DNA of 64,000 nucleotides, taken from NCBI GenBank assembly GCA_013416795.1, contig RQSC01000308.1, positions 1 to 64,000 on the forward strand, given 5' to 3'. Below, piece by piece: positions 32,888 through 48,548 of this stretch. The position numbers were made by a program, and so were the translations under genes. The DNA comes from Prasinococcaceae sp. CCMP 1430 (taxonomy: Eukaryota > Plantae > Prasinodermophyta). The notes below the pieces were generated by a model. It worked only from the letters and a program-made list of their open reading frames with translations, was not told the origin of the DNA and searched no databases. Each line of letters starts with the position of its first letter. Positions within the stretch are counted from its first letter, which is position 1.

Positions 32888-33086
32888 GACGCACCCACAG
32901 TACCATGGCCTGCGAGCGCGGGTTCGGCGCGTCACGGCGCGCCTGCGCCCGCGCGCAGCGAGTGTAAATTTCCTCCCCGCTAGAACGACCAGCGCATGGA
33001 CTCGGTGCGGCGCGCGTGTGCGCACAGATGGGGCATGATATAAAAATGGTGTCGACCTATCTCTCTAGGGCGCGGCTACGCGCTGT

Positions 33087-35799
33087 TCACCGCGCGCTCC
33101 TGGGCTTCCACTCGCACGCCGACACGCCCGTGTCGCCCTCGGCGGCCGCGCCGCCCATCAGCGCCTCCGCGTAGTTGGCACCCCTGCCTTTGGCCGCCTT
33201 GAGCAGCTCGGCCGCCTCGTCGACGGTGAGCGGCTTGGGGCGGTCCCTGTCGGCAGCCACGATGCACAGAAAGCCGAAGGGCTCCGACGCGTTGGGCGCG
33301 CAGCGGAACTTCACGCGCGCGCGTGCGCAGGGACGCGCGCGTATGCGCGCAGGCGGTCGAGGTCAGCATGGCTGTGCGCCTGGGGCGTCGGCGCGCATCG
33401 GACAGAGCGAGCGGGTTCGCGCGCACGCGCGACACGCACGCACGACAGCGCGCTTCCCCTACCTGGTGGGCGTGGTTCGGGGCAGTGTACACGACGTCGC
33501 CGAAGGACAACGGCACGATCTCTGGCCCAAGCTGCGCCTCGCCTTGCCCGCGAATGACCACGACGGTGTGCTGGTGCTCGTGGCGCTCGAGCGTGGAAAA
33601 GCCGCCCGGCGCACATTCGAAGTAACGTGTGTGCTGCGCGGCGCTCTCCCCGCGCTTGCCGATGAGCTCAACGCGCGACACGCCCTTGAATGTCGAGCCG
33701 TCCTGCTTGTATGCCTCAACGGGCACGCCCGACCAGCGGAAACTGCTCGGAGAGAAGCGCAGCACCTTGCTCTTGTCTCCTTCAATCGTGAATGTCGACA
33801 AGCTGCTGAGCATCTCCTCGATCGACCAGTCGTCCGGGATAGGCAGGGGCCTCCTCTTCGCAGGCACAGGCGCCGATGGCGCCTCTCGACGCACGGCACT
33901 CTGCATGAGCTCCCCTACAGCCGCGGCGCCGCCGCCCACGCTTGGCGCGGGCAAGGGGCTCCCGCGGGTCGCGGAGGTACCGCCACCTACGTCTGGCATG
34001 GGGAGAGGGCTCTTCATCGCGGCCGCCCTCGACCAATCGTTCTCCTCGTCGCGGCCCATGACCATGGGCGTGAGCGCTGCCGCCGCCGCCGCGCCGCCGC
34101 CAACGGTCGGTGTTGGAAGGGGACTCTCCAGCGCTGCCGAGGTGCCACCGCCGACGTCCGGCATGGGCAGCGATGGCACCGACGACTCGGCCTCCTCACC
34201 CATCGCCATGCACCTAAGCGCCACCGCTGACAGGCCCTTGCTTGGAGACATCGCAGCGGCGAGGGCGCGCCCGGCGGGCGTCAAGGGGTGGGACTCAGGG
34301 GCGACCGAGCTCAAATGCTGCATGGTTGGCGGCGGCGTGGCCGCCTGGCCGTTCTTGCGCGCGAGCATCGCGCTGGGCGAGGGTGGCGGCGCGTATGGCC
34401 CGTTGCGCCCGGCAGCGTCTGCAAACGCGCGCGCGTTCGCCTCGAGGTCGGGACCCGCCTGCAGTAGCGCGCCGCCGATGAGGAAGAGCGTGTCGTCGCC
34501 GAAGGTCTCGCGCATCTCAGTGCACCTGTGCAGCTTCATGCCACCCGCTGGGCACGGCAGGGCAGGCCTGAATCGGCCCATGGGCCGCCTGCACCCCTCG
34601 GCCACCGCCTGGCACTCGTCGGGAGTGAATTTGAAGCGCCCGCCCGCGTTGGGGAAGATGACCGCGTCAGCGCCCAGAAGGCGCGGGAGCGTGCCGAAAA
34701 GAAAGTCGTGCGTGAAGCCGCCCGCGTCGCCGCTCGAGCCCGACAGCCAGCCGCCGAGCATGGCGGGGTGCAGTAGTATGGGCAGCCCGAAGTTGGGGTC
34801 GGCCGCCAGCTCGCGCATGCAGTCGAAGCCCGTAATTCCCGGCAGGAGCATGATGGCGCCGCAGCCCTGATCCTTGGCGTACCAGGCGCGCTGCAGCACC
34901 TTGGTGCACGGCGCGTTGAGCGAGGGCGCGTACAGGCAGTTGCGCCCGGTCTCGGCGTTGGCGAGCGCAACGGCGCGCGAGCACATGGCCACGCGCTCCT
35001 CGAAGGGCGCCCACACCTGGTCGGCCAGCCCGTGGTCATCCTTGATGATGTCACAGCCGCCGCGCGCAAGCAGGTACGCCATGCGCGCGAGTTCGGCGCT
35101 CGACTTGCCCATGGGCTTGAGCGCCGTCATGAGCAGCGGTGCGCGCGACACGCCGAGCATCTTGCGCAGGCCTTGCACGCCGAAGCGTGCGCCAGGGAAC
35201 ATGTTCGTGTCGGCGAGCAGCTTCGGCGAGAGCGTCACGTCGACCACCGCCACCCCGGGCTTGAGGCTCGTGTTCCCGAAGACCACGTTGAGCCACTGCG
35301 TGAGCTCGTCGCCGGCAGTGTCGTTGGGGTACGCGATCGATACCCTGCGCGCGCGGGAGCAATTGCGTGTGTGAAGAAAGGGGGGGAGGGGGGGGGGGGG
35401 TCGCCGGGAAGGGCGTCAGGTCGCGCATACCGCATCGCTGCTGGGGCACGCCGGCGCGGGCTCGGACGCCCCTGCGCGGCGCGCACCGCTTGCGTGCGCG
35501 CACCTGTACTCCTCGCCCTCGGTGATGGGCGCGATGCGCTCAATCGAGCCCACCACGTAGGGCATCACCTCCTGCACCGCGGTGGTATCCTCAGGGAGCT
35601 CGACGGTCTGTTCGAGGCACGCTTCCCACGCGCGCGCACGTGCGTCGTCGACCGACGACGCCTTGATAGCATAGTCCACCCAGAAGCGCTCGGGATGCTT
35701 GAGGTCGTCGGGCACGCGCGTCGCCGGGTAGCCGCGCACCGCCCCGTCGACGACGGCGCGCATCGCGCCGTCGCTCTCGCCGCCGCGCCCGGTGCACAT
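33087..35799 (-). CDS. rlp: RuBisCO-like protein (form IV, R. rubrum-type) fused to a C-terminal cupin (exons 35799-35504, 35344-33463, 33308-33087)
   Basis: CLEQTVELP, WLNVVFGNTSL, LKPMG, IIKDDHGLADQ, GADAVIFPNAGGRF, PAGGM, LIGGALL. Cupin: YFECAPGGFSTLERHEHQH...GDVVYTAPNHAHQ|FRC..FGFLCIVAADRDRP. Both introns splice in frame. Confidence 0.92.
33905..34190 (-). repeat. Two-copy tandem repeat (period 165 nt, 55 aa) in the RLP-cupin linker
   Basis: LPMPDVGGGTSA..SPLP.P.VGGGAAA occurs twice; ggcatggg anchors at 33995 and 34160. Confidence 0.8.
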
Positions 35800-36529: not shown

Positions 36530-37840
36530 ATGCCCGCCGCGCCGCGGCTGCTGCCGTCGGCGCCGCCGGCGGGCGAAGCAGGCGCGTGGGAGGAGGTCGC
36601 CGGAGGCGGCGTGACCGAGCCTGCGGGATTCTCCGCGGCTGGCGTCGCCGCGGGGCTGCGGTCGAGCGGCAAGCGCGAGGACCTCTCGCTCGTGCTCTCT
36701 GATCGCCCCGCCGCAGGGGCGGGCTGCTTCACGCAGAACCGCGTGTGCGCCGCGCCCGTCACGTACTGCAAGCAGGCGCTCGAAGCGATGGGCTACGAGG
36801 GCGTGCGCGCGGTGCTCACCAATGCGGGTCAGGCCAACGCCGCCACCGGCGAGCAGGGGTGGGAGGACTCGCTCTCCGGCGCGCAGGCCGCTGCCGACGC
36901 GCTTGGCGTGCCCCGCGACGCCGTCATGGTGATGAGCACGGGCGTCATCGGCCAGCGCATCAAGATGGAGCCCTACCTGGCGTCCATCCCGGACGCGGTG
37001 GCCGCGCTGGGCAGCTCGGCCGAGCATGGCACCGCCGCTGCGGAGGCCATCACGACCACTGATCTCGCGCGCAAGCAGGTGGCCGTGCGCGTCTCCCTGC
37101 CCTCGGGCGGCTCCGTCAGCATCGGCGGCATGGCCAAGGGCTCCGGCATGATCCATCCCAACATGGCGACAATGCTGGGCGTGGTGACCACCGACGCGGC
37201 CGTGGCGCCTGAGGCGTGGCGCAAGATGCTGCGCGCCGCCGTCGCGCGCTCCTACAACCAAATTACCGTCGACGGCGACACCTCGACCAACGACACGGTC
37301 ATTGGCCTCGCCAACGGCGCGGCGGCCGAGGGCGGCGTGCAGCCGATCTCCGACGCGGACAGTGCCGACGGAGCGGCGCTCACGGCTGCGCTCACCGCGG
37401 TGTGCGAGGCTCTGGCCAAGTCAATCGCGTGGGACGGCGAGGGCGCGACGGTGCTCATCGAGGCGAGCGTCACGGGCGCCGCCAGTGACGCCGACGCGCG
37501 CGAGATCGCCAAGTCGGTGTGCGGTTCGAGCCTGGTGAAGAGCGCGGTGTACGGTCGCGATCCCAACTGGGGCCGCATCGCCGCGGCTGCGGGGTACGCT
37601 GGTGTGGAATTCGACCAGGCGGACCTGTCCGTTTGGCTGGGCGAGGCGCAGCTCATGAGCCGCGGCCAGCCGCTCGAATTCGACGAGTCGGCCGCAAGCA
37701 AGTACATGGCTGACGCGGGCGACTGCCGCGGCACCGTGCGCATCGGCGTGCGCGTGGGCGACGGCAGCGGCTCGGGCAAGGCGTGGGGATGCGATCTGAG
37801 CTACGACTATGTCAAAATCAACGCCGAGTATACGACGTAG
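36530..37840 (+). CDS. argJ: ArgJ ornithine/glutamate N-acetyltransferase; true N-terminus or transit peptide uncertain
   Basis: GFSAAGVAAGL, FTQNRVCAAPV, NAGQANAATGEQG, STGVIG, AITTTD, GMAKGSGMIHPNMATML (autoproteolytic Thr), VDGDTSTND, DGEGAT, DPNWGRI, CDLSYDYVKINAEYTT. Confidence 0.96.
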   Translation: MPAAPRLLPSAPPAGEAGAWEEVAGGGVTEPAGFSAAGVAAGLRSSGKREDLSLVLSDRPAAGAGCFTQNRVCAAPVTYCKQALEAMGYEGVRAVLTNAGQANAATGEQGWEDSLSGAQAAADALGVPRDAVMVMSTGVIGQRIKMEPYLASIPDAVAALGSSAEHGTAAAEAITTTDLARKQVAVRVSLPSGGSVSIGGMAKGSGMIHPNMATMLGVVTTDAAVAPEAWRKMLRAAVARSYNQITVDGDTSTNDTVIGLANGAAAEGGVQPISDADSADGAALTAALTAVCEALAKSIAWDGEGATVLIEASVTGAASDADAREIAKSVCGSSLVKSAVYGRDPNWGRIAAAAGYAGVEFDQADLSVWLGEAQLMSRGQPLEFDESAASKYMADAGDCRGTVRIGVRVGDGSGSGKAWGCDLSYDYVKINAEYTT

Positions 37841-37943: not shown

Positions 37944-40532
37944 TCAGAGGATGAGGCTGACGGCGCACCCCACAGCGGCGTAGGTGAACGCGATGCCCGC
38001 GGCATAGCACAGCGCGCGGAGGACCACGCCCATCCGCCCCACGTTGCCGCTGCCCGCGAAGAGCGCCAGCGTGGTGGGCACCAAGGGGTACACACATGGG
38101 CTCAGGGACGCCAGCAGCCCCCAGGGATAGCACAGCATCACTGTGATCGCTCGCTCTGTGGGCGACGCCTTGCCGCAGTCATCAGGCGAGTCCGCCTGCG
38201 GCGTGCCAGACGCGTGTCCGCGCAGGGGTCAGCAGACGCGAGCATGCGAGCGTCAGCGTGCGCGCGCGGCGCAAGCGGTGGCGCTGGCAGGGACGCACCT
38301 CCGGATCGAGCCCCTTTGCCGCGCGCTCGAGCACCTCGTTCAGCCTCGCAGCCGACAGCTTGCCACGCAGCACCGTCTCTGGTGGTGTGCGGCGCAGATC
38401 GCCTTCACCCGCTGCCATGGTGGTCGCTCGCACAATCACGTACGCCGGCATGCCCCCCGCGCCCCATATCTGATCCTTCAGGGTCGCGCATTCGCTCTGC
38501 CTGTTCGTGGAGTCACACTTGACGCTAACAAAGTCGGCGTCCAGCGTGGAGACGACATCGGCGTCCGCCAGCGTCGTGTAATCGGCGAAGCGGCAGGTCA
38601 CGCACCAGTCAGCGTAAAAATCTACAAAGAGCCCCTTTCCAGCCTCGACAGCGCTTTGCGCGCCCTCGTGCGGGTCAGGCTCCCACGCAATGGCGCTCGG
38701 GGGCGGATCCAGCAGCCGTCCGGGTGCGCGCGAGAATGGCTCCCCTGTGACAGCAAAGCCCCACACGGCAAAGAATGCAACAACGCATGCGATGAGCAGC
38801 GCGGCGGAAGAGAGGAGCGACCGCGCCGTGAGCTCTCGACGGCGCAGCACGGGCAGGCGGCGCTGCCACTTTCGCGGCCTCGTGGCCTCAAGAGCGATCA
38901 TCTCGTCCAGCGGGAGCTCCTCGACCGCGACCCTCCGCAGCAGCGCGCTGCACACAATGAAGACAGCCCAGGCGCCGAAGGAAGTGGCCATCGCGGCGAA
39001 GGCCAGCGTCGCACCGCCGTCCGTGCTCACCAAGAAGTAGGCCGCGCTGATGAGCACGATGAAGCCTGAGTGCACCTTCAGCCTGTCGAGCCACGGACCA
39101 GGCTCGGGCAATCGCGTCACCAGTCCGCTGGCGACGGCCGCGAGAAGCAGTATCGTCGCCAGGCCCATCCCAAAGAGGAACAGCCCCGCCGCGCCCACCA
39201 CGTAGTCGCGCGAGGTGGCGACATACACAAGCACGGAGGCGGCGAAGGGCCCCACGCAGGGCGAGACCACCAGACCGAATGTACAGCCGCGCGCCAGCGC
39301 ACCGAGATAGGTGACGCCGGGCTGTTCGGGGGATCGCTGGGAGCGCGCTTTGGAGACGTCGCCCGCCTGTTCAACGTCCTCTGTGTCCGCCTTGACGCCT
39401 CCTCCCGCGGTAGCCGCGCCCTGTCCCGGGACCAGCCTTTTGAGGATGAAGTTGGGGACCTTGAGGTCGAACAGGCCCCACATTGACAATGCCATGAGAA
39501 TGAGGATGGAAAGAACCACACCCAGCACGGCTGGCTGCGCGAGCACTTGGCCGACGTCCGCTGAGCGCGCGCAGCTCTCAAAAGTGCCGATGCCGTCATC
39601 GCGGCTGACGTCACCGCCAGGCAGCCCGCTACCAGCGTCGCCGCCCTCGTCACCCACGCCAAGCAGTGCGCTCAGATTGCCAGAGCGCGTGGCCAGCTCA
39701 TACGCCTCCAACTCAGAAAGAGTCGCCACGCGAGTGAGATCGGCGTGGATGTCGTACGCAGGCACGCCCGGCGTATCCAGGAGGTACTGGTGCCAGCACA
39801 AATTTGGGCTGCACGAGGAGAAGGCAACCTCCAGAGGCAGCGTGAGCGTTGCGGCCAAAAGGTCGTCTGTGGCATCGGAGACGTTCGCGGGAGCAGCGGC
39901 CATGGTGCTGGACGCATTGACGACGGCCGCTGCGCGCGTGCACATGCGCGTCAACTCGTCAGTCGGGAGTAGAGCGCGCGACGCTTGTTCGCACGTACCG
40001 CGAAATGAAGTTGAGAGCGCGCGTGCATGCGGACGAGCGCGCGGCAACACACACCTCGGAGCTCATCGACGTCTGCAACCTCGCCCACGAGTACCCCAAC
40101 CACCTGTCCGGGTCCCTTGTACTTCGTCGCGTCATAGCTGAAAAAGCGACTCTCGAAGCGCTCCACCAGGGGTAACGGGAAGGTGGCGAGCGCATCAGCC
40201 AGGCCCGCATCGCCGTATGCAGGCGCTCCGATGCGCGCGGCGCGGGCTTCGGTATACGAGTAGCACTGCGGCGCCTCCTCGTTGGAGCAGTCACGTGGCC
40301 CGTAAATGTGGCAGCCCTGCGGCATGCGTAGCCGCACCCACGCCACCACGCGCGCCGCGCCGCCGCTCTCCGAAGCAGCGTAGTATGCGCCGCCGCCATC
40401 GGCGGCCGTCACGCACTCGGCCTCGGCCTCGTACGGTTCGTAGCCCTCTTCGGAGCAGGCGCGCTGCGCCAGCACCGCAGCTAGCACGAACGCCAGCGCC
40501 GCGCATCGCGCGGGCATGCGCGCGCACCGCAT
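37944..40532 (-). CDS. dsbD: DsbD-family thiol:disulfide transporter with permuted TM order (exons 40532-40055, 39929-38299, 38195-37944; about 786 aa)
   Basis: Order is: signal peptide; n-domain (MPQGCHIY, SSCSPNLCW); TM3-8 (LAQP..LSMWGLF, VVSPCVGP, GMGL, LPEPGPWLDRLK); thioredoxin (FVDFYADWCVTC); then, after a GT-AG intron, TM1-2 (GLLASLSPCVYPLVP..YAAGIAFTYAAVG). Confidence 0.88.
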
Positions 40533-41154
40533 GACCGCGCCGCGCCGCGCCAGCGCCAGCGCCGCCGCCGCGCTGCTACGCCACGCGCATGGCGTGTGCC
40601 TCGCCACACGCGCACGCGCGCGCGCGCGTGGCACGCACCCGGCGCTTCGGGGAATCCCTTAACCCCCTTAAGGGGTGCACCCGTTTTCGACCGGAGAAGC
40701 CGCAAAACTGAACCGGATTAAGCCATACTTGTAACCCGGTGACATGCGTTTCGATCCGGGTCTACGCGCGGGGCGAGTAATTGCAATTTGCTCGCGCGTT
40801 CCCCAAGCGTGCGGACTCGGCACGGCACTGGAGGGCAGGCGCCCCCTCCCGCCTCCCGCCCCCCACTGCCCGCTCTCCTCCAGCGCGGCGCACCGTTCGA
40901 CCCAATCCTCGCGCGCGCCCAGCGATCCGACGGCCAGGCGCGCGCGGCCCCTCCCAGTGCGTGGCGCGCTCGCAGCACAGAGCGCGCACGCGCGCGGGCT
41001 GCCGCCCACCGCTGCCTGGCGCGCGTGGGCGCGTGCTCCTCCTCTCCCCCTTCTGCCCTTGCGTGTGCGCGGTCGCGCCGTCGCAGCGGCGGTGGTTTCG
41101 ACGGCGATAGGCGCTGCGGTGATACGCGCGCGGCGACTGCCACGCTTGGCACAC

Positions 41155-42432
41155 ATGTCGGAGGTCGAGGGGTGTCCTGGTTGGTGGGAGTACGAGTCAG
41201 AGGAAGGCGTCCCGTACTTTTTCAACGACGAGACCGAGGAGACGCGCTGGGAGCACCCCTCGCTCGCGGGCGACGGCGGGAGGGTGGCGGGTGACAGCGG
41301 TGGTAATGAAAGCGGTGGCGAGCATGCGCTCGACTTGAGCGGTGCTGTAGCGGGGTCTGAGACGCAGCCGCGAGCGCAAGAGGATGAGTGGGTAGTGGGC
41401 GATGGCGGCGACGGTGGCAGCAGCAGCGGCGATGGCGATGACAAGATGACACAGTTCAAACAGGCTGTCGGCATGCTCAAGTCGCGCGGCGTCTTTGGTG
41501 GCGTCCGGACAGAAGAAATGCGGAGCATTAAGCCCACGCGCAACCGCTTGAGCTCACAATTTTCCGAGTCGAGGGCCATGCTTGCCAAGCTGGGCATCCT
41601 CGACGCGCCCAGTGGCACGGCGGCGCGCGCGGAGATCGAGCAGCGCGTTCCAAACGCTATCACGGAGGAAGACGAGTACGCAGAGAAACCAAAGGGCGAC
41701 GAGGAGCAGGAAATGCCCGTGATCACAGAGGGATTCCGAGACGATGAGGAGGTGGACGCGTTGTCAGCGGTGAAGGCCTCGTCCGCGGCGGAGGCTTCCC
41801 CAGCGCCGGCCACCACCGCCACGTCTAACGTCACCAAGTGGGAGCCCATCGGCGTGGAGGCTGTGTCATTTATTTGCTTCGACGTCGACGAGCGCACGGT
41901 CACAATGCCAATGTGGGCGGCAGGCACCCATGGCAATCTGCAGGTGGGCATGGTGGTGCTCGCCTGGGAGGGCCTGGTGACGTGGGGCCCCACCTCCAAC
42001 GATCCTTTCCTGATCCCCTACGAGAACATGGTCATGTGGACGCTCGACCCGACCGATGCTGCGCTCGACATCACCATGGAAGGCACCTTCGATCCCACGG
42101 CACGGAAGCTGAAACTGCTCACTGGCGAGGTCATCGATCTGCGCGTGTGCCTGCCCACGCCCACCGTGGCCTTCGAGCTCTACAAGTCGCTGAAGGAGGT
42201 GTGCACGCGCGTGGGCAAGGAGAAGCGTGCGCAGCTCGATAAGGAGGCGCTCAGGAGGACCAAGCTGATGGCGGACAAGGTCAAGACACTCGCACTGGCA
42301 GGCATGTCGGGCCGCCAGCGACGTTTGTCCGTCAACGTGAGCGCAAGCGACGCCGCTGCTGACGACGTCGCCGTCGCTGTCAATCAGGCCGCCATACTAA
42401 AGCAGGCCAGGCGGCAGCTCAACGGACAGTGA
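41155..42432 (+). CDS. WW-domain protein with a C-terminal PH-like region
   Basis: GWWEYESEEGVPYFFNDETEETRWEHP (WW). The beta-rich C-terminal segment followed by a helix suggests a PH-like fold (inference). Confidence 0.65.
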   Translation: MSEVEGCPGWWEYESEEGVPYFFNDETEETRWEHPSLAGDGGRVAGDSGGNESGGEHALDLSGAVAGSETQPRAQEDEWVVGDGGDGGSSSGDGDDKMTQFKQAVGMLKSRGVFGGVRTEEMRSIKPTRNRLSSQFSESRAMLAKLGILDAPSGTAARAEIEQRVPNAITEEDEYAEKPKGDEEQEMPVITEGFRDDEEVDALSAVKASSAAEASPAPATTATSNVTKWEPIGVEAVSFICFDVDERTVTMPMWAAGTHGNLQVGMVVLAWEGLVTWGPTSNDPFLIPYENMVMWTLDPTDAALDITMEGTFDPTARKLKLLTGEVIDLRVCLPTPTVAFELYKSLKEVCTRVGKEKRAQLDKEALRRTKLMADKVKTLALAGMSGRQRRLSVNVSASDAAADDVAVAVNQAAILKQARRQLNGQ

Positions 42433-43376: not shown

Positions 43377-43701
43377 NNNNNNNNNNNNNNNNNNNNNNNN
43401 NNNNNNNNNNNNNNNNNNNNNNNNNNNNNNNNNNNNNNNNNNNNNNNNNNNNNNNNNNNNNNNNNNNNNNNNNNNNNNNNNNNNNNNNNNNNNNNNNNNN
43501 NNNNNNNNNNNNNNNNNNNNNNNNNNNNNNNNNNNNNNNNNNNNNNNNNNNNNNNNNNNNNNNNNNNNNNNNNNNNNNNNNNNNNNNNNNNNNNNNNNNN
43601 NNNNNNNNNNNNNNNNNNNNNNNNNNNNNNNNNNNNNNNNNNNNNNNNNNNNNNNNNNNNNNNNNNNNNNNNNNNNNNNNNNNNNNNNNNNNNNNNNNNN
43701 N
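43377..43701. other. Assembly gap (325 N) covering the head-to-head starts of NAA40 and POLA1
   Basis: Run of N; both flanking ORFs run into it from opposite strands. Confidence 0.97.
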
Positions 43702-46700
43702 CGGCGGCCGCCCGTCGCGGCGCAACGCGTCGCGCGCCGAAAAGGCAAAGGCGCTGCTCGGGGGGCTCGCGGCCGCGCGAGCGGGCGGCGTGACGCGCGT
43801 GGAGCAGTACGAGTACCAGGAGGAGGAGGACGTGTACGACGCGCTCAACGACGAAGAGTACGCCAAGCACGTCGCGGAGAAGCGCCAGCAGGCCGCGGGA
43901 TTCGTCGAGGATGACGACGGGTTCGGCTACGCCGACATCGGCGAGGAGGAGGACTGGGGAGCCGGCGGTGGCGTGAGCGCGGGCGGCGAGAGCGGCCGCG
44001 CGCGCGCGCAGAAGCGAGCGCGCGCGCAGGAGGCGGCGGCCGCGCGCAAGAAGGCGGCCATGCCGCAGCCCACCGAGCGTGGCCGCATCAGTCGCCTGCT
44101 CGCCGCGAGCGCTCGCGCCGCGCCAGCGAAACGCAAGGCTGCTGCTGGCGTGGACGACAGCGATGCGCTGCTCGAAGATATCCTTAGCGGCCTGGGCACC
44201 GACGCCGGGGACAAGGCCCGGGTGCGCCAGCAGACGCTCGAGCGCAAGGCCAAGATGGCGGCCGCTGGCTCGATTCCAATCGTGCAGCCGAAGGCGGCGG
44301 TGACGGCAGCGGCACTCACTGCGACGCCGCCCAAGCGCGGCGCCGCGGCTGCTGCCGCACGCTTCGCCAAGTCTCCATCGCCCCTCAAGGCCCCAGCACC
44401 TGCCAATGGCCAAGCCATGGAGGAGCCGCCTGATGGGGCCGAGCCCGCAGATCCTCCCGCGTCGGCTCCTGAGACGCCGGCCGCGCCTGCTGCCGCTGAA
44501 CCCTGTGCTGAGCCCGCCGCCGCTCAGCCAGCGCCGGCCGGCGATGCGCAGCCCAGCGCGGCGAAGAAGGCCAGGGTGACCTTTGCGACGGAGGCGGCGC
44601 CCACCGAGAGGGAGTCCGCATGGAAGGCCGCCTGCGACGCCCAGGGGGCATCGCAGGCGCGCGCCGCCGCTGCGGCCGAGGAGGAGGCCCGCGTGGCCGC
44701 GGCGACCACCACCGCCAACAGCAATGACCTCCCCCTCGACGAGGATGGCACGCTCCCGTTCTACTTCACGGACGCCCATGAGGAGATTTTCTCGCCGGGC
44801 ACGGTCTACCTTTTCGGCAAGGTGCCCGTTCAACGCACCTTCGTGAGCTGCTGCGTGGCCGTGCGCAACCTGCAGCGCTGCGTCTTTGTGGTGCCGCGGC
44901 AGGGCATGCTCAGCACGCCCGACATTGCCGAGGCACACGCCGCGCTGCAGAAGCAGCAGGCGGATGGCGACGAGGCCGCTGTGAAGGACGCCAAGCGCAC
45001 GCTCAACATGGCCCTGCACGGCGCGAGCGCACCCTTCAAGGATGAGCTGCGCGCGGCGCTTAACAAGGCAGGCATCGACCAGTACAAGATCAAGTTCGTG
45101 CGTCGCACGTACTGCCTGGAACGCGACGATATCCCCAATGGCGAACAGTGGGTAGTCAAGCTCACCTACCCTGCCAGCAACAACGCGCTCCCAAGTGACC
45201 TCAAGGGCGAGCACATCGCCGCCGCGCTGGGGACGCACGCGAGCGCCATCGAGAACCTGCTCGTCAAGAGGCGCATCATGGGTCCGAGCTGGCTCGCGCT
45301 GAGCAACGCGGAGCGCGTCAACGGCATCAAGGCGAGCTGGTGCACGCTCGAGGTCGACCTCAAGGACAAGAAGGACATCTCCAGCAAGCCCGCCAAGCAC
45401 CGTGCCCCGGCGCCCCTCGTGGTTTGTTCGGTCAGCCTGCGCACAATCGTTAATCCGCGCACCAACGCATCGGAGATCGCGGCCGCGAGCCTCATTACCG
45501 CCGGCAGCGTGCGCTGCGACACGACGACTCCGCGTGCCGAGTGGAACACGCCATCGTATCTGCGCCAGCAGACGCTCGTGCGCCGCCTGGATGGGATGGC
45601 GTTCCCGCACGGCTTCGAGAAGAAGGTGTCCGAGGAGAACAGTCGCGGCATGGGCCGCGTCCTCGAGGCGTGCGCGTCCGAGCGCGCCCTCCTGGTCATG
45701 CTGCTCGCCAAGATCGAGAAGCTCGACCCGGACGTCATCGTGGGCCACAACGTGGCCGGCTTCGACCTGGAGGTGATCATGCAGCGCATGCAGGTCAACA
45801 AGGCCCCGCACTGGAGCCGCATCGGCCGGCTGCGCCGCTCGAAGTTCCCGAAGCTTGGCGCCCCAGGCAGCTCGACCTTCGGCTCCGGTGCGTCGCCAGC
45901 CCTCATGTCGTGTGTGGCTGGCCGCCTGCTGTGCGACACCTATCTCGGTGCTAAGGAGCTCTTGCACGAGGTGAGCTACAGCCTGAAGGCCCTCTCGGAG
46001 ACGCAACTCGGCGAGACCAAGCAGGATATGCCGCCGTCAGAGGTGGTCAAGTCGTACGAGGAACCCGCGAAGCTGGTGGCTCTCACCGAGTCAGGCGTCA
46101 AGGACGCGTGGCTCTCACTTGCACTGATGTTCCACATGAACCAGCTGCCGCTCACCAGGCAGTTGACGGAGCTGTGTGGGAATGTGTGGTCGAAGACGCT
46201 CGGTGGGCAGCGTGCCCAGCGCATCGAGTTCCTGCTGCTGCACGAGTTCCACGCGCGCAAGCACCTGGTGCCGGACCGCCTGCCGAAGTCCGAACGTGAG
46301 CGCGTCGCCAGGGCTGCCGGCCTGAAGCGCAGCGGCGATGACGACTTCGACATGATGCCTCCCGACGACATCGAGGCCGACATCGGCGGTGGCGGTGGCA
46401 CCGGTAAAAAGAGCGCGCGCCGTCGCCAGAAGGCGCAATACGCCGGCGGCCTCGTGCTTGAACCAAAGAAGGGCCTCTATGACGACTTCGTCATCATGAT
46501 GGACTTCAACTCGCTGTACCCATCTATCATCCAGGAGTACAACATCTGCTTCACCACTGTGCCGCTTGCGCGCGCGGCCACTGAAGAGAATGAGGAGGGC
46601 GCCGCCGAGGGCCCGCCGCCTCTGCCCGACGCCGATCTCCCTCCAGGCATCCTGCCGCTGACCATCAAGAAGCTGGTGCAGCGCCGCCGCGAAGTCAAGA

Positions 46701-48548
46701 ACCTCATGAAGAACGAGCGCGATCAGGGGGCGTACCAACAGCTGCATATCAGGCAGCTGGCACTCAAGCTGACAGCCAACTCGATGTACGGCTGCCTCGG
46801 TTTCAGCAACAGCCGCTTCTACGCCAAGCCGCTCGCCATGCTGGTGACTTCGCAGGGCCGCGAGATCCTCCAGAGCACGGTGGACCTCGTGCAGATAAAC
46901 ATGGGTCTGGACGTGGTGTACGGTGACACAGACAGTATCTTCGTGCACACCGGCAAGTCTGAGCTGCAGGATGCGTACCATATCGGGAACCAAATCAAGC
47001 GCGAGTCCAACCGCCGCTTCCGCCTGCTCGAACTCGAGATCGACGGCGTGTACAAGACTATCCTGCTGCTGAAGAAGAAGAAGGTGCGAGCTCTGATGGA
47101 CCTGCGCGTGCAAGCGTCGCCTGCGCCGCTCGAGTGTGCTCTGACACGACGCGCATCTGCCCCGCATCCATGGCCATCACTCCCCGGCCGCCGGCGCCTC
47201 GCAGTACGCCGCGCTCAAGGTTGAGCCTGTCAAGGGCGGTGGCTACACCACGTCGATGGAGATGAAGGGCCTCGACATCGTGCGCCGTGACTGGTGCCCG
47301 CTGTCAAAGGATGCGGGCAAGTTCGTGCTTCGCGAGGTGCTGTCGGGCAAGGCGCGTGAGGATGTCGTCGAATCGATCCACGCGCACCTCGAGCGCGTCA
47401 AGGAGCAGATGGACGGCGGCAGCGTGCCCCTGGGCAAATACATCATCACCAAGGCGCTCACCAAGGATCCCAAGGAGTACCCTGATGCACGCAACCAGCC
47501 GCACGTGCAGGTGGCGCTTCGCCGCCGCGCGCAGGGTCGGCGTGAGGGCACCAGTGCCGGCGACACCGTGCCGTACATCATCTGCACGGCCGAGTCCATT
47601 GCCAAGCTGGAGGCTGGGCAGACGGAGGGCGGCGAGGACGCAACGGCGGCAAAACCCAAGGCGGGCGGTTCGCTGGCGGAGCGCGCCCGCCACTTCGAGG
47701 AAGTCAGCAAGTCGCAGGGCGCGCTTGAGGTCGACGTGGAGTGGTACAAGACGCAGCAGGTGCACCCCGTGGTGAGCCGCCTGGTTGCCGTGATCGAGGG
47801 CACCGACGCTGCGCGCATCGCGCACTGCCTCGGCCTTGACTCCTCGAAGTTCAACACCGCCACCGTCGGTGCGAGCGCCGCGGCTGACGACGGCATGGAC
47901 GCGCTCTTCCTCGACGACGACGCGCTGTACGAGAGCTGCGACAGGCTTGACCTTAGGCCGAGCATGGAATCCGTGCCGTCGCCGTTTCCGGGCGCCCGCG
48001 CTGTGGCACTCGGCGCTTCGGCCAGCGGCGACGACCGCGCGGCATGCGCGCGCACCGTGGAGGGCATCTCGGCGGCCGCGCTGGCCAACCAGGCGGCGCT
48101 GGCGGCGCGCCGCGTGGCGAGGGAATACTACGATGGCTGGCTGCGCGCCGACGACGAGGCTGTGCGCTACCGCACCCGCAACGTGTGCAGCCGCACAGAA
48201 GCGGGCGCCCCGCCCGGCTCGCTTCCCGCGGTGCAGGCACACCAGGTGGCGCTCCTCGGCGGCGCCGACGGCCCGCGCGTGTGCCGCGAGCGCTCCGAGT
48301 CGTCACTCTTCCGCCAGCTGCGCGCGTGGGAGCGCGCACTCGACCCGGCGCGCGCCGTCGAGGCGCTGCCGCAGGAAATGCAGGCGCAGGGGCGTGACAA
48401 CCTCGCACGCCACCGCGCGGCGCTCGACGCAGGCAGCCGCGCCGTCGGCCGCGTGCTCGGCGCGAGCGCGTACAACTGGGTGAGCCTGGGTAGCCTCTTC
48501 CCGACGGCGCTCTTCACCCCCGCCGCCGCGGGTGCACAGGTGTGCTAG
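43702..48548 (+). CDS. POLA1: DNA polymerase alpha catalytic subunit (intron 47084-47204); 5' end in the gap
   Basis: N-terminal YDALNDEEY..FVEDDDGFGY.DIGEE; DPDVIVGHN; YAGGLVLEPKKGLYD; DFNSLYPSIIQEYNICFTT; LKLTANSMYGCLGF; YGDTDSIF; LLKKKK|YAAL; KGLDIVRRDWC; QPHVQVA; YKTQQVHPVVSRL. Confidence 0.96.

Follow-up and report, generated by a model that had tools for sequence, protein, structure and literature searches.

The DNA analysed here is a stretch of 64,000 nucleotides from Prasinococcaceae sp. CCMP 1430 (contig RQSC01000308.1; 'the window' below), with a G+C content of 65-73% throughout, and the element in question is a DsbD-like gene on its minus strand, at positions 37,944-40,532. Our analysis suggests that this is probably an expressed nuclear gene of a green-lineage alga, and that it encodes a circularly permuted thiol:disulfide electron transporter of the DsbD family, bacterial in origin, that starts with a signal peptide. 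RNA from field samples shows that the gene is transcribed and spliced, and its domain order is shared by a small group of relatives in which the transmembrane hairpin that opens the membrane core of bacterial DsbD lies at the carboxy terminus.

Gene structure and domain order

The DsbD-like gene runs from 40532 to 37944 and can be divided into three exons (40532-40055, 39929-38299 and 38195-37944) with 786 codons, which encode eight predicted membrane helices past the signal. The first reading frame contains a signal-like start and a Cys-containing domain; the second completes that domain and adds six hydrophobic helices and a thioredoxin-like domain; and a third, short frame downstream of the thioredoxin domain encodes two further helices. 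An earlier note on this DNA, made from the letters alone, had described the interval 39790-40532 as belonging to a complete three-domain DsbD with a secretory signal peptide in a eukaryote, possibly a redeployed bacterial DsbD. The interval does cover the signal-peptide-like start and the amino-terminal domain (n-domain), but it also contains a 125-nt intron that the note did not record. Likewise, the n-domain, the transmembrane (TM) part, the thioredoxin-like c-domain and six redox cysteines are all encoded, but the set is complete only if the TM1-TM2 hairpin in the third exon is counted.

Two relatives serve as references throughout. P0002 (750 residues, 60% identical) is encoded on a Tara Oceans contig by one uninterrupted, intronless open reading frame (ORF) of 2,253 nt, and P0003 (777 residues, 37% identical) is a hypothetical protein of the green alga Cymbomonas tetramitiformis whose gene spans 9.5 kb and contains introns. 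Both have the order signal-like start, n-domain, TM3-TM8, thioredoxin domain and TM1-TM2, and the three exons of the window are collinear with them. The exons were searched one by one, and the intronless P0002 was used as the proxy for folding.

Both introns have GT-AG ends and are confirmed by spliced RNA contigs from a marine metatranscriptome. In particular, a 602-nt RNA contig covers 38629-38298 and then 38194-37926, so that it joins the thioredoxin exon to the hairpin exon and reaches past the stop codon. An alternative acceptor for intron 2 at 38169 was ruled out, as the RNA contig puts the acceptor at 38196. The features of the gene, all on the minus strand, are as follows.

40452-40532 (-): start codon (40530-40532) and 27-residue signal-peptide-like N-terminus, MRCARMPARCAALAFVLAAVLAQRACS, delimited by n-, h- and c-region heuristics
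40055-40451 (-): rest of exon 1: acidic spacer, then the opening part of the nDsbD-like domain, including four extra conserved cysteines; collinear with P0002 and P0003, and covered by RNA contigs at 40055-40366
40407-40418, 40287-40316 and 40242-40268 (-): sites of the four extra conserved cysteines, in ECVT, GCHIYGPRDC and QCYSYTEAR, respectively
39930-40054 (-): intron 1, 125 nt, GT..AG, phase 1; an RNA contig joins 39929 to 40055
39775-39929 (-): start of exon 2, with the last n-domain strands, the redox pair CSPNLC (39796-39813), which aligns with the invariant C-x4-C of its closest bacterial nDsbD counterparts, and two N-x-S/T sequons
38749-39528 (-): six helices corresponding to DsbD TM3-TM8; SPCVGP (39247-39264) contains the TM4 redox Cys; Pfam DsbD_TM (E 2e-24), NCBIfam and hydropathy
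38299-38748 (-): thioredoxin-like c-domain with WCVTC (38593-38607), to the end of exon 2; Pfam Thioredoxin_7 (E 8.8e-12) and orthologue model
38196-38298 (-): intron 2, 103 nt, GT..AG, phase 0; 602-nt RNA contig
37944-38195 (-): exon 3, with a short linker, the displaced TM1-TM2 hairpin (37947-38195) and the stop codon TGA (37944-37946); SPCVYP (38085-38102) contains the TM1 redox Cys; Pfam, NCBIfam and position in the orthologues

The membrane core is split between two exons in an order that differs from that of bacterial DsbD. Exon 2 matches positions 114-215 of the Pfam DsbD_TM profile (E 2e-24) and exon 3 matches positions 11-68 (E 2e-08); with the NCBIfam DsbD profile, the corresponding positions are 282-408 for exon 2 and 165-235 for exon 3. 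Since exon 3 matches the start of the DsbD_TM profile, TM1-TM2, including the TM1 Cys, lie past the thioredoxin domain. Thus, the order read from the mRNA of the window and from the orthologues is signal peptide, n-domain, TM3-TM8, thioredoxin c-domain and, at the carboxy terminus, TM1-TM2. The earlier description of the protein as a bacterial DsbD therefore stands for the family, in what is now seen to be a spliced eukaryotic nuclear gene, but not for the arrangement, which departs from the bacterial order in having TM1-TM2 past the c-domain.

Comparison with bacterial proteins and with models supports this assignment. Fragments of bacterial TM1-TM2 show a gap-free alignment with the 71 C-terminal residues of P0002, and bacterial TM3-to-thioredoxin fragments align to P0002 residues 245-660 with every cysteine in register. 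Every permuted relative conserves the redox motifs SPCVGP (TM4) and SPCVYP (TM1), and even at an identity of only 37% none of the six redox cysteines or PCxxP motifs is lost. A model of P0002 residues 236-750, which comprise TM3-TM8, the thioredoxin domain and the hairpin, has a predicted local distance difference test score (pLDDT) of 86.6 and a predicted template modelling score (pTM) of 0.82, with values of 80-94 in the carboxy-terminal hairpin, and the thioredoxin domain in the model matches the cDsbD structures 1VRS_E, 2FWE and 1UC7 with template modelling (TM) scores of 0.71-0.79 by target. The helix directions are predicted to be preserved: TM3 starts outside, as TM1 does in the usual order, TM8 ends outside, and TM1-TM2 then pass in and back out. 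On these predicted directions, the rearrangement is a topology-preserving circular permutation.

Because neither Pfam nor NCBIfam gave an n-domain match (NCBIfam found nothing in exon 1), the identity of this domain was tested by profile-profile comparison and by fold. With hhalign, a profile built from the eukaryotic n-domains aligns with a profile of 18 bacterial DsbD n-domains over 98 columns with a probability of 85.5% and an E-value of 5.7e-6, from the [FYW]HIY strand (CHIY in the window protein) to the C-x4-C pair, whose spacing is identical in the nearest bacterial DsbDs. The AlphaFold2 model of the P0002 n-domain (residues 37-205) is all-beta, with a pLDDT of 89.3 and a pTM of 0.83. 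With this model, the consistent Foldseek matches are nDsbD structures (probability 1.00, template modelling score ~0.5 by target), and the top 11 Protein Data Bank entries found by VIA-align are nDsbD (E. coli, Neisseria) or the ScsB N-domain, with Z scores of 8.3-9.5 and root mean square deviations of 2.5-4.3 A over 101-122 residues; the next entry, an unrelated fold, has a Z score of 6.8. We accept the modelled all-beta domain as an nDsbD-type domain, in line with the earlier proposal of an immunoglobulin-like n-domain with a C-x4-C pair, here CSPNLC. The four extra cysteines of this domain are conserved across the eukaryotic sequences but do not occur in the bacterial sequences.

Relatives, rarity and bacterial origin

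A word search with exon 2 gave three close matches, namely a 99%-identical fragment, P0002 and P0003, after which the matches drop to bacterial DsbDs at E ~1e-17. An exhaustive profile search of 1.84 billion representatives identified 16,127 DsbD-family proteins at E <= 0.001. Domain order was surveyed in the best 150 of these 16,127 matches, in cluster members and in the three close matches of the word search. The order TM4, thioredoxin domain, TM1 was found only in P0002, the Cymbomonas cluster, a 1034-residue, a 791-794-residue and an 817-residue cluster, and two fragmentary clusters; all other surveyed proteins with readable motifs have TM1 ahead of TM4. The contigs of two of the permuted clusters carry neighbours of eukaryotic type, including Serinc, an SBDS gene split into two ORFs and a p25-alpha/EF-hand protein, and all of the roughly seven permuted clusters appear to be eukaryotic. 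The permuted family is rare and, in named records, confined to early-branching green algae. The earlier note had regarded its proposal as open to refutation if such proteins proved widespread in algae and already described; the survey finds the family rare, and a literature search on DsbD in algae and eukaryotes, signal peptides and circular permutation found no description of a eukaryotic three-domain or permuted DsbD. The genome paper of Prasinoderma (PMC7455551) makes no mention of DsbD, thioredoxin or disulfide.

In a maximum-likelihood tree of the collinear TM3-to-thioredoxin part, the six permuted sequences form one clade with support of 100/100. The sister group consists of metagenomic DsbDs with the canonical order, whose nearest named relatives belong to candidate phyla (Wallbacteria, Riflebacteria, Planctomycetota and others) and are at most 39% identical. 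The best match among 185,579 species genomes has an identity of 24-28%. A bacterial origin of the permuted DsbD is clear from these sequence relationships. The phylogeny that had been suggested as a way to find the donor thus resolves the permuted proteins as a single clade, but neither the tree nor the species-genome matches pin down the donor lineage.

Some of the permuted relatives show further variation. The 1034-residue protein (P0122/P0269; L084, 3808-6912), found on eukaryote-like marine contigs, contains two tandem n-like domains, the first of which has the motif AEGCHIA and a C-x6-C pair, and its thioredoxin motif is ACLNC instead of WCxxC. Neither the called ORF of this protein nor the in-frame sequence upstream of it shows an obvious signal peptide, so that it adds no targeting evidence. 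The called ORF of the 817-residue cluster (P0124, 20 members) is without an n-domain and has an insert of ~300 residues between TM6 and TM8 that contains a CPYF motif and has no Pfam match.

The N-terminus and the cellular destination of the protein

The minus-strand ATG at 40532 opens the ORF MRCARMPARCAALAFVLAAVLAQRACSEE, which runs on into the Cys-containing domain, so that a signal-peptide-like start followed by an n-domain is indeed encoded, as had been noticed earlier. The start has basic residues at positions 2, 5 and 9, a hydrophobic core (LAFVLAAVLA) with a mean Kyte-Doolittle value of 2.98 and small residues, A-C-S (-3/-1), just before EEGYEPYEAEAE, where the cleavage site is set by heuristic. 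The 25 residues past this putative site have a net charge of -7 and a single Ser/Thr. In all three full-length orthologues, a short basic stretch leads into a hydrophobic core and then small residues, with acidic sequence immediately after, and the Cymbomonas N-terminus in particular reads, by heuristic, as a plain 22-residue signal-peptide-like start. The residues ahead of the mature domain number 22-38 across these proteins, and are therefore too few for a bipartite thylakoid presequence. The absence of a plastid transit peptide, also claimed in the earlier note, is supported: there is no room for one, and the type of start is common to two orthologues, including that of Cymbomonas. Neither an upstream exon nor a transit peptide encoded by it was found (the RNA contigs reach 40366), and there is no in-frame ATG between the upstream stop codon (about 40670) and Met1.

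The remainder of the protein is consistent with passage through the endoplasmic reticulum (ER). Of the Asn residues in the n-domain and linker, 4 of 4, 3 of 5 and 4 of 11 (eleven in total) belong to N-x-S/T sequons, as compared with 0 of 17 Asn elsewhere. The extra cysteines of the n-domain are as would be expected for a protein folded in the ER, and the loops rich in Lys and Arg, read from the hydropathy segments, are on the predicted cytosolic side. The nature of the host also bears on the question. The DNA polymerase alpha gene in the window (43703-47224 and beyond) has the Pfam domains of eukaryotic polymerase alpha, and its only named close matches are from streptophyte green plants (a EukProt 'SM' record, presumably Spirogloea, Ceratodon and Cryptomeria). 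Because this gene matches green plants, the host can be placed in the green lineage, with a primary plastid; primary plastids import proteins via transit peptides and not via signal peptides, so the signal points to the ER and the secretory route rather than to the thylakoid. A pelagophyte host such as Aureococcus, suggested by the 69% GC, was rejected on the strength of the polymerase matches; a Prasinoderma-like alga is a candidate in keeping with the GC (69.8% in Prasinoderma coloniale; PMC7455551). Taken as predictions, these features indicate that the DsbD-like protein most likely enters the secretory pathway.

A mechanism can be proposed on this basis. The signal peptide would carry the n-domain across the ER membrane, and the eight helices would form the usual DsbD core, in which the TM4 Cys and the TM1 Cys, now carboxy-terminal, become adjacent. 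The n- and c-domains would both lie on the non-cytosolic side. Cytosolic thioredoxin would reduce the membrane Cys pair, from which electrons could pass to the c-domain, on to the n-domain and finally to lumenal or extracellular substrates that carry disulfides or sulfenic acids.

Several points weigh against the interpretation as a permuted DsbD of the secretory pathway. The protein is a predicted one, and its activity, topology and location are read from sequence. The RNA contigs end at 40366, which leaves the first 166 nt of the coding sequence (40367-40532) and the 5' untranslated region (UTR) without RNA cover, and in green algae of high GC, N-termini rich in Arg and Ala can also direct import into organelles. 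Pfam DsbD_N does not match the n-domain even at an E-value of 10. In addition, the cut-off of 330 bits for the NCBIfam DsbD subfamily NF001419 is missed by exon 2 (113 bits), P0002 (134 bits) and P0003 (147 bits); P0125, a bacterial relative with the canonical order, likewise falls under it (276 bits).

Where the protein would act once it has entered the secretory pathway is a more tentative matter. One possibility, which we consider plausible without favouring it, is the plasma membrane or another compartment past the ER, with substrates in the wall or scale space or in the vacuole. The evidence for secretory entry fits this location as well, and no retention signal is seen. It would be comparable to the role of bacterial DsbD and ScsB in feeding periplasmic peroxiredoxins, methionine sulfoxide reductases and the repair of copper damage, and bacterial homologues do act in this way at the cell surface (PMC13713018). 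However, nothing positive points to the surface, and no partner genes are seen, eukaryotic gene neighbourhoods being uninformative in this respect.

Residence in the ER membrane itself, where a DsbD homologue of some early-branching green algae would feed electrons from cytosolic thioredoxin to lumenal reductases and isomerases of PDI (protein disulfide isomerase) type, is in our estimate rather unlikely. The signal-peptide-like start, the enrichment in sequons and the extra cysteines fit entry into the ER, and a relay from thioredoxin to the ER via a membrane protein, likened to DsbD, is needed in mammals (PMC7197872). However, no ER-retention feature was seen, the carboxy termini of the protein and its orthologues are predicted to be lumenal and end in hydrophobic residues (SLIL, SFVL and TVFI), and no lumenal partner was identified. 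Also, a family confined to a few algae is not a general eukaryotic solution.

A thylakoid location is improbable. Here the protein would replace CCDA together with HCF164/CCS5 in the maturation of cytochrome c and b6f, and its N-terminus would be, or be preceded by, a plastid presequence. The only known plant and algal members of the DsbD family are the thylakoid CCDA proteins (PMC5526843), Arg/Ala-rich starts are found in algal transit peptides, and the 5' end of the gene is the part that has no RNA cover. However, a lumen-facing n-domain needs a bipartite presequence, for which just 22-38 residues are available before strongly acidic sequence begins; the Cymbomonas start is a plain signal peptide by appearance, the sequon enrichment fits passage through the ER, and there is no upstream ATG in frame.

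Still less probable is a place in the mitochondrial inner membrane, facing the intermembrane space and supplying reductant for System I cytochrome c maturation, as bacterial DsbD does by feeding CcmG (PMC5526843). The N-terminus is Arg-rich and no DsbD counterpart is known in plant-type mitochondria, but the basic stretch ahead of the hydrophobic core is only ~10 residues long, the sequon and disulfide features fit the secretory route, and nothing positive speaks for the mitochondrion.

That the odd order is an artefact of assembly or annotation, or the gene an inactive relic of transfer, is highly implausible: there is an assembly gap nearby (43378-43702) and the score is under the NCBIfam DsbD cut-off, but one RNA contig spans the thioredoxin and hairpin exons of a gene whose transcription and splicing are seen in field samples, an identical order is found in the uninterrupted ORF of an independent metagenome and in Cymbomonas, and the six cysteines and PCxxP motifs are kept at 37% identity.

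Neighbouring genes, significance and known systems

Upstream of the main ATG lies a four-codon ORF (ATG CGC GTG GCG TAG; 40580-40600, minus strand), ~55 nt 5' of it, which would fall in the 5' UTR if transcription starts further upstream. Between 40552 and 40655, one contig has several substitutions relative to the window, along with 2 nt deleted and 2 nt inserted, which suggests strain variation in the promoter or 5' region. At 41155-42432 (plus strand), separated from the DsbD-like start by 624 bp on its upstream side, lies a divergent gene that encodes a WW domain at the N-terminus (Pfam E 3.2e-05, slightly below the gathering score) and is otherwise unassigned, and beyond it an assembly gap, a run of N at 43378-43702, separates a minus-strand GNAT-like ORF from the readable start of the DNA polymerase alpha gene. 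On the other side, the gene for ArgJ (ornithine acetyltransferase; 36530-37840, plus strand) is convergent with the DsbD-like gene. With only ~100 bp between the two stops (37840 and 37944), the 3' UTRs of both genes must be very short or overlapping. Further along, a long ORF at 33076-35286 (minus strand) encodes a RuBisCO-like protein fused to a C-terminal part that resembles cupins.

How reducing power crosses the ER membrane is a long-standing question in the field of oxidative folding. In mammals, reduction of ER proteins by the cytosolic thioredoxin pathway depends on a membrane protein, which has been compared with DsbD (PMC7197872). In 2026, BLASTP searches gave no broadly conserved eukaryotic homologues of DsbD or ScsB, and the unrelated ERGU-1/TMEM161B was proposed as an analogue (PMC13713018). 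The earlier statements that the short CCDA is the plastid form and that the full-length form is otherwise bacterial agree with the literature, in which no eukaryotic DsbD or ScsB homologue is reported (PMC5526843, PMC13713018). Its further statement that no conduit to the ER had been identified holds in so far as ERGU-1/TMEM161B is not a DsbD homologue, but it takes no account of the proposal of this protein as a functional analogue (PMC13713018).

If the algal protein does function on the secretory side, it would provide a directly testable eukaryotic model of a thiol relay from the cytosol to the lumen or to the surface. If, more specifically, it resides in the ER, it would be a natural eukaryotic instance of the trans-ER relay postulated for mammals, derived from a bacterial protein with a moved hairpin. 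The move of TM1-TM2 is itself a natural experiment on the assembly of the DsbD/CcdA core, and the family shows that algae can acquire, and retain, a redox device of the bacterial envelope. As the family is narrow (a few marine green algae), it says little on eukaryotes generally.

Among known systems, bacterial DsbD (E. coli and Neisseria meningitidis; 1L6P, 1JPE, 6DPS, 2FWE and 1VRS) is the closest in composition. It shares with the algal protein the n-domain, TM and c-domain parts, the eight helices and the six redox cysteines with their motifs (C-x4-C, the spacing of the nearest bacterial relatives; PCxxP in TM1 and in TM4; and WCxxC), and the n- and c-domains of the algal protein are predicted to be non-cytoplasmic, as in DsbD. 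The algal protein differs in that TM1-TM2 come after the c-domain and not before TM3, in that it is encoded by a eukaryotic nuclear gene with spliceosomal introns, and in the four extra conserved cysteines and N-x-S/T sequons of its n-domain; its identity to prokaryotic DsbD is 24-28%. ScsB (Proteus mirabilis; 6C29) is a transporter of the DsbD family that also has an immunoglobulin-like N-domain, and 6C29 matches the n-domain model with a Z score of 8.9 over 122 residues. However, the N-terminal region of ScsB is larger (247 residues in the solved chain), its order is canonical and it is bacterial.

CcdA and the plant and algal CCDA proteins (5VKV) have the same Pfam DsbD_TM core, and the C-terminal hairpin of P0002 matches CcdA residues 5-60. 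CCDA is plastid-targeted and consists of six helices with neither n- nor c-domain (PMC5526843), and together with HCF164/CCS5 it represents the DsbD family in the plastid, whereas the algal DsbD has eight predicted helices, both domains and a signal-like start. The bacterial thioredoxin-CcdA fusions (for example P0165 and P0219), in which a thioredoxin domain lies directly ahead of TM1, provide a precedent for the local order of thioredoxin domain and TM1-TM2; in these, however, TM1 continues into the remainder of the core, an n-domain is absent and the order is not permuted. Finally, ERGU-1/TMEM161B, an animal ER membrane protein, has the same proposed role of passing reducing power from the cytosol to the ER side, but it is non-homologous to DsbD, reportedly binds heme and occurs widely among animals (PMC13713018).

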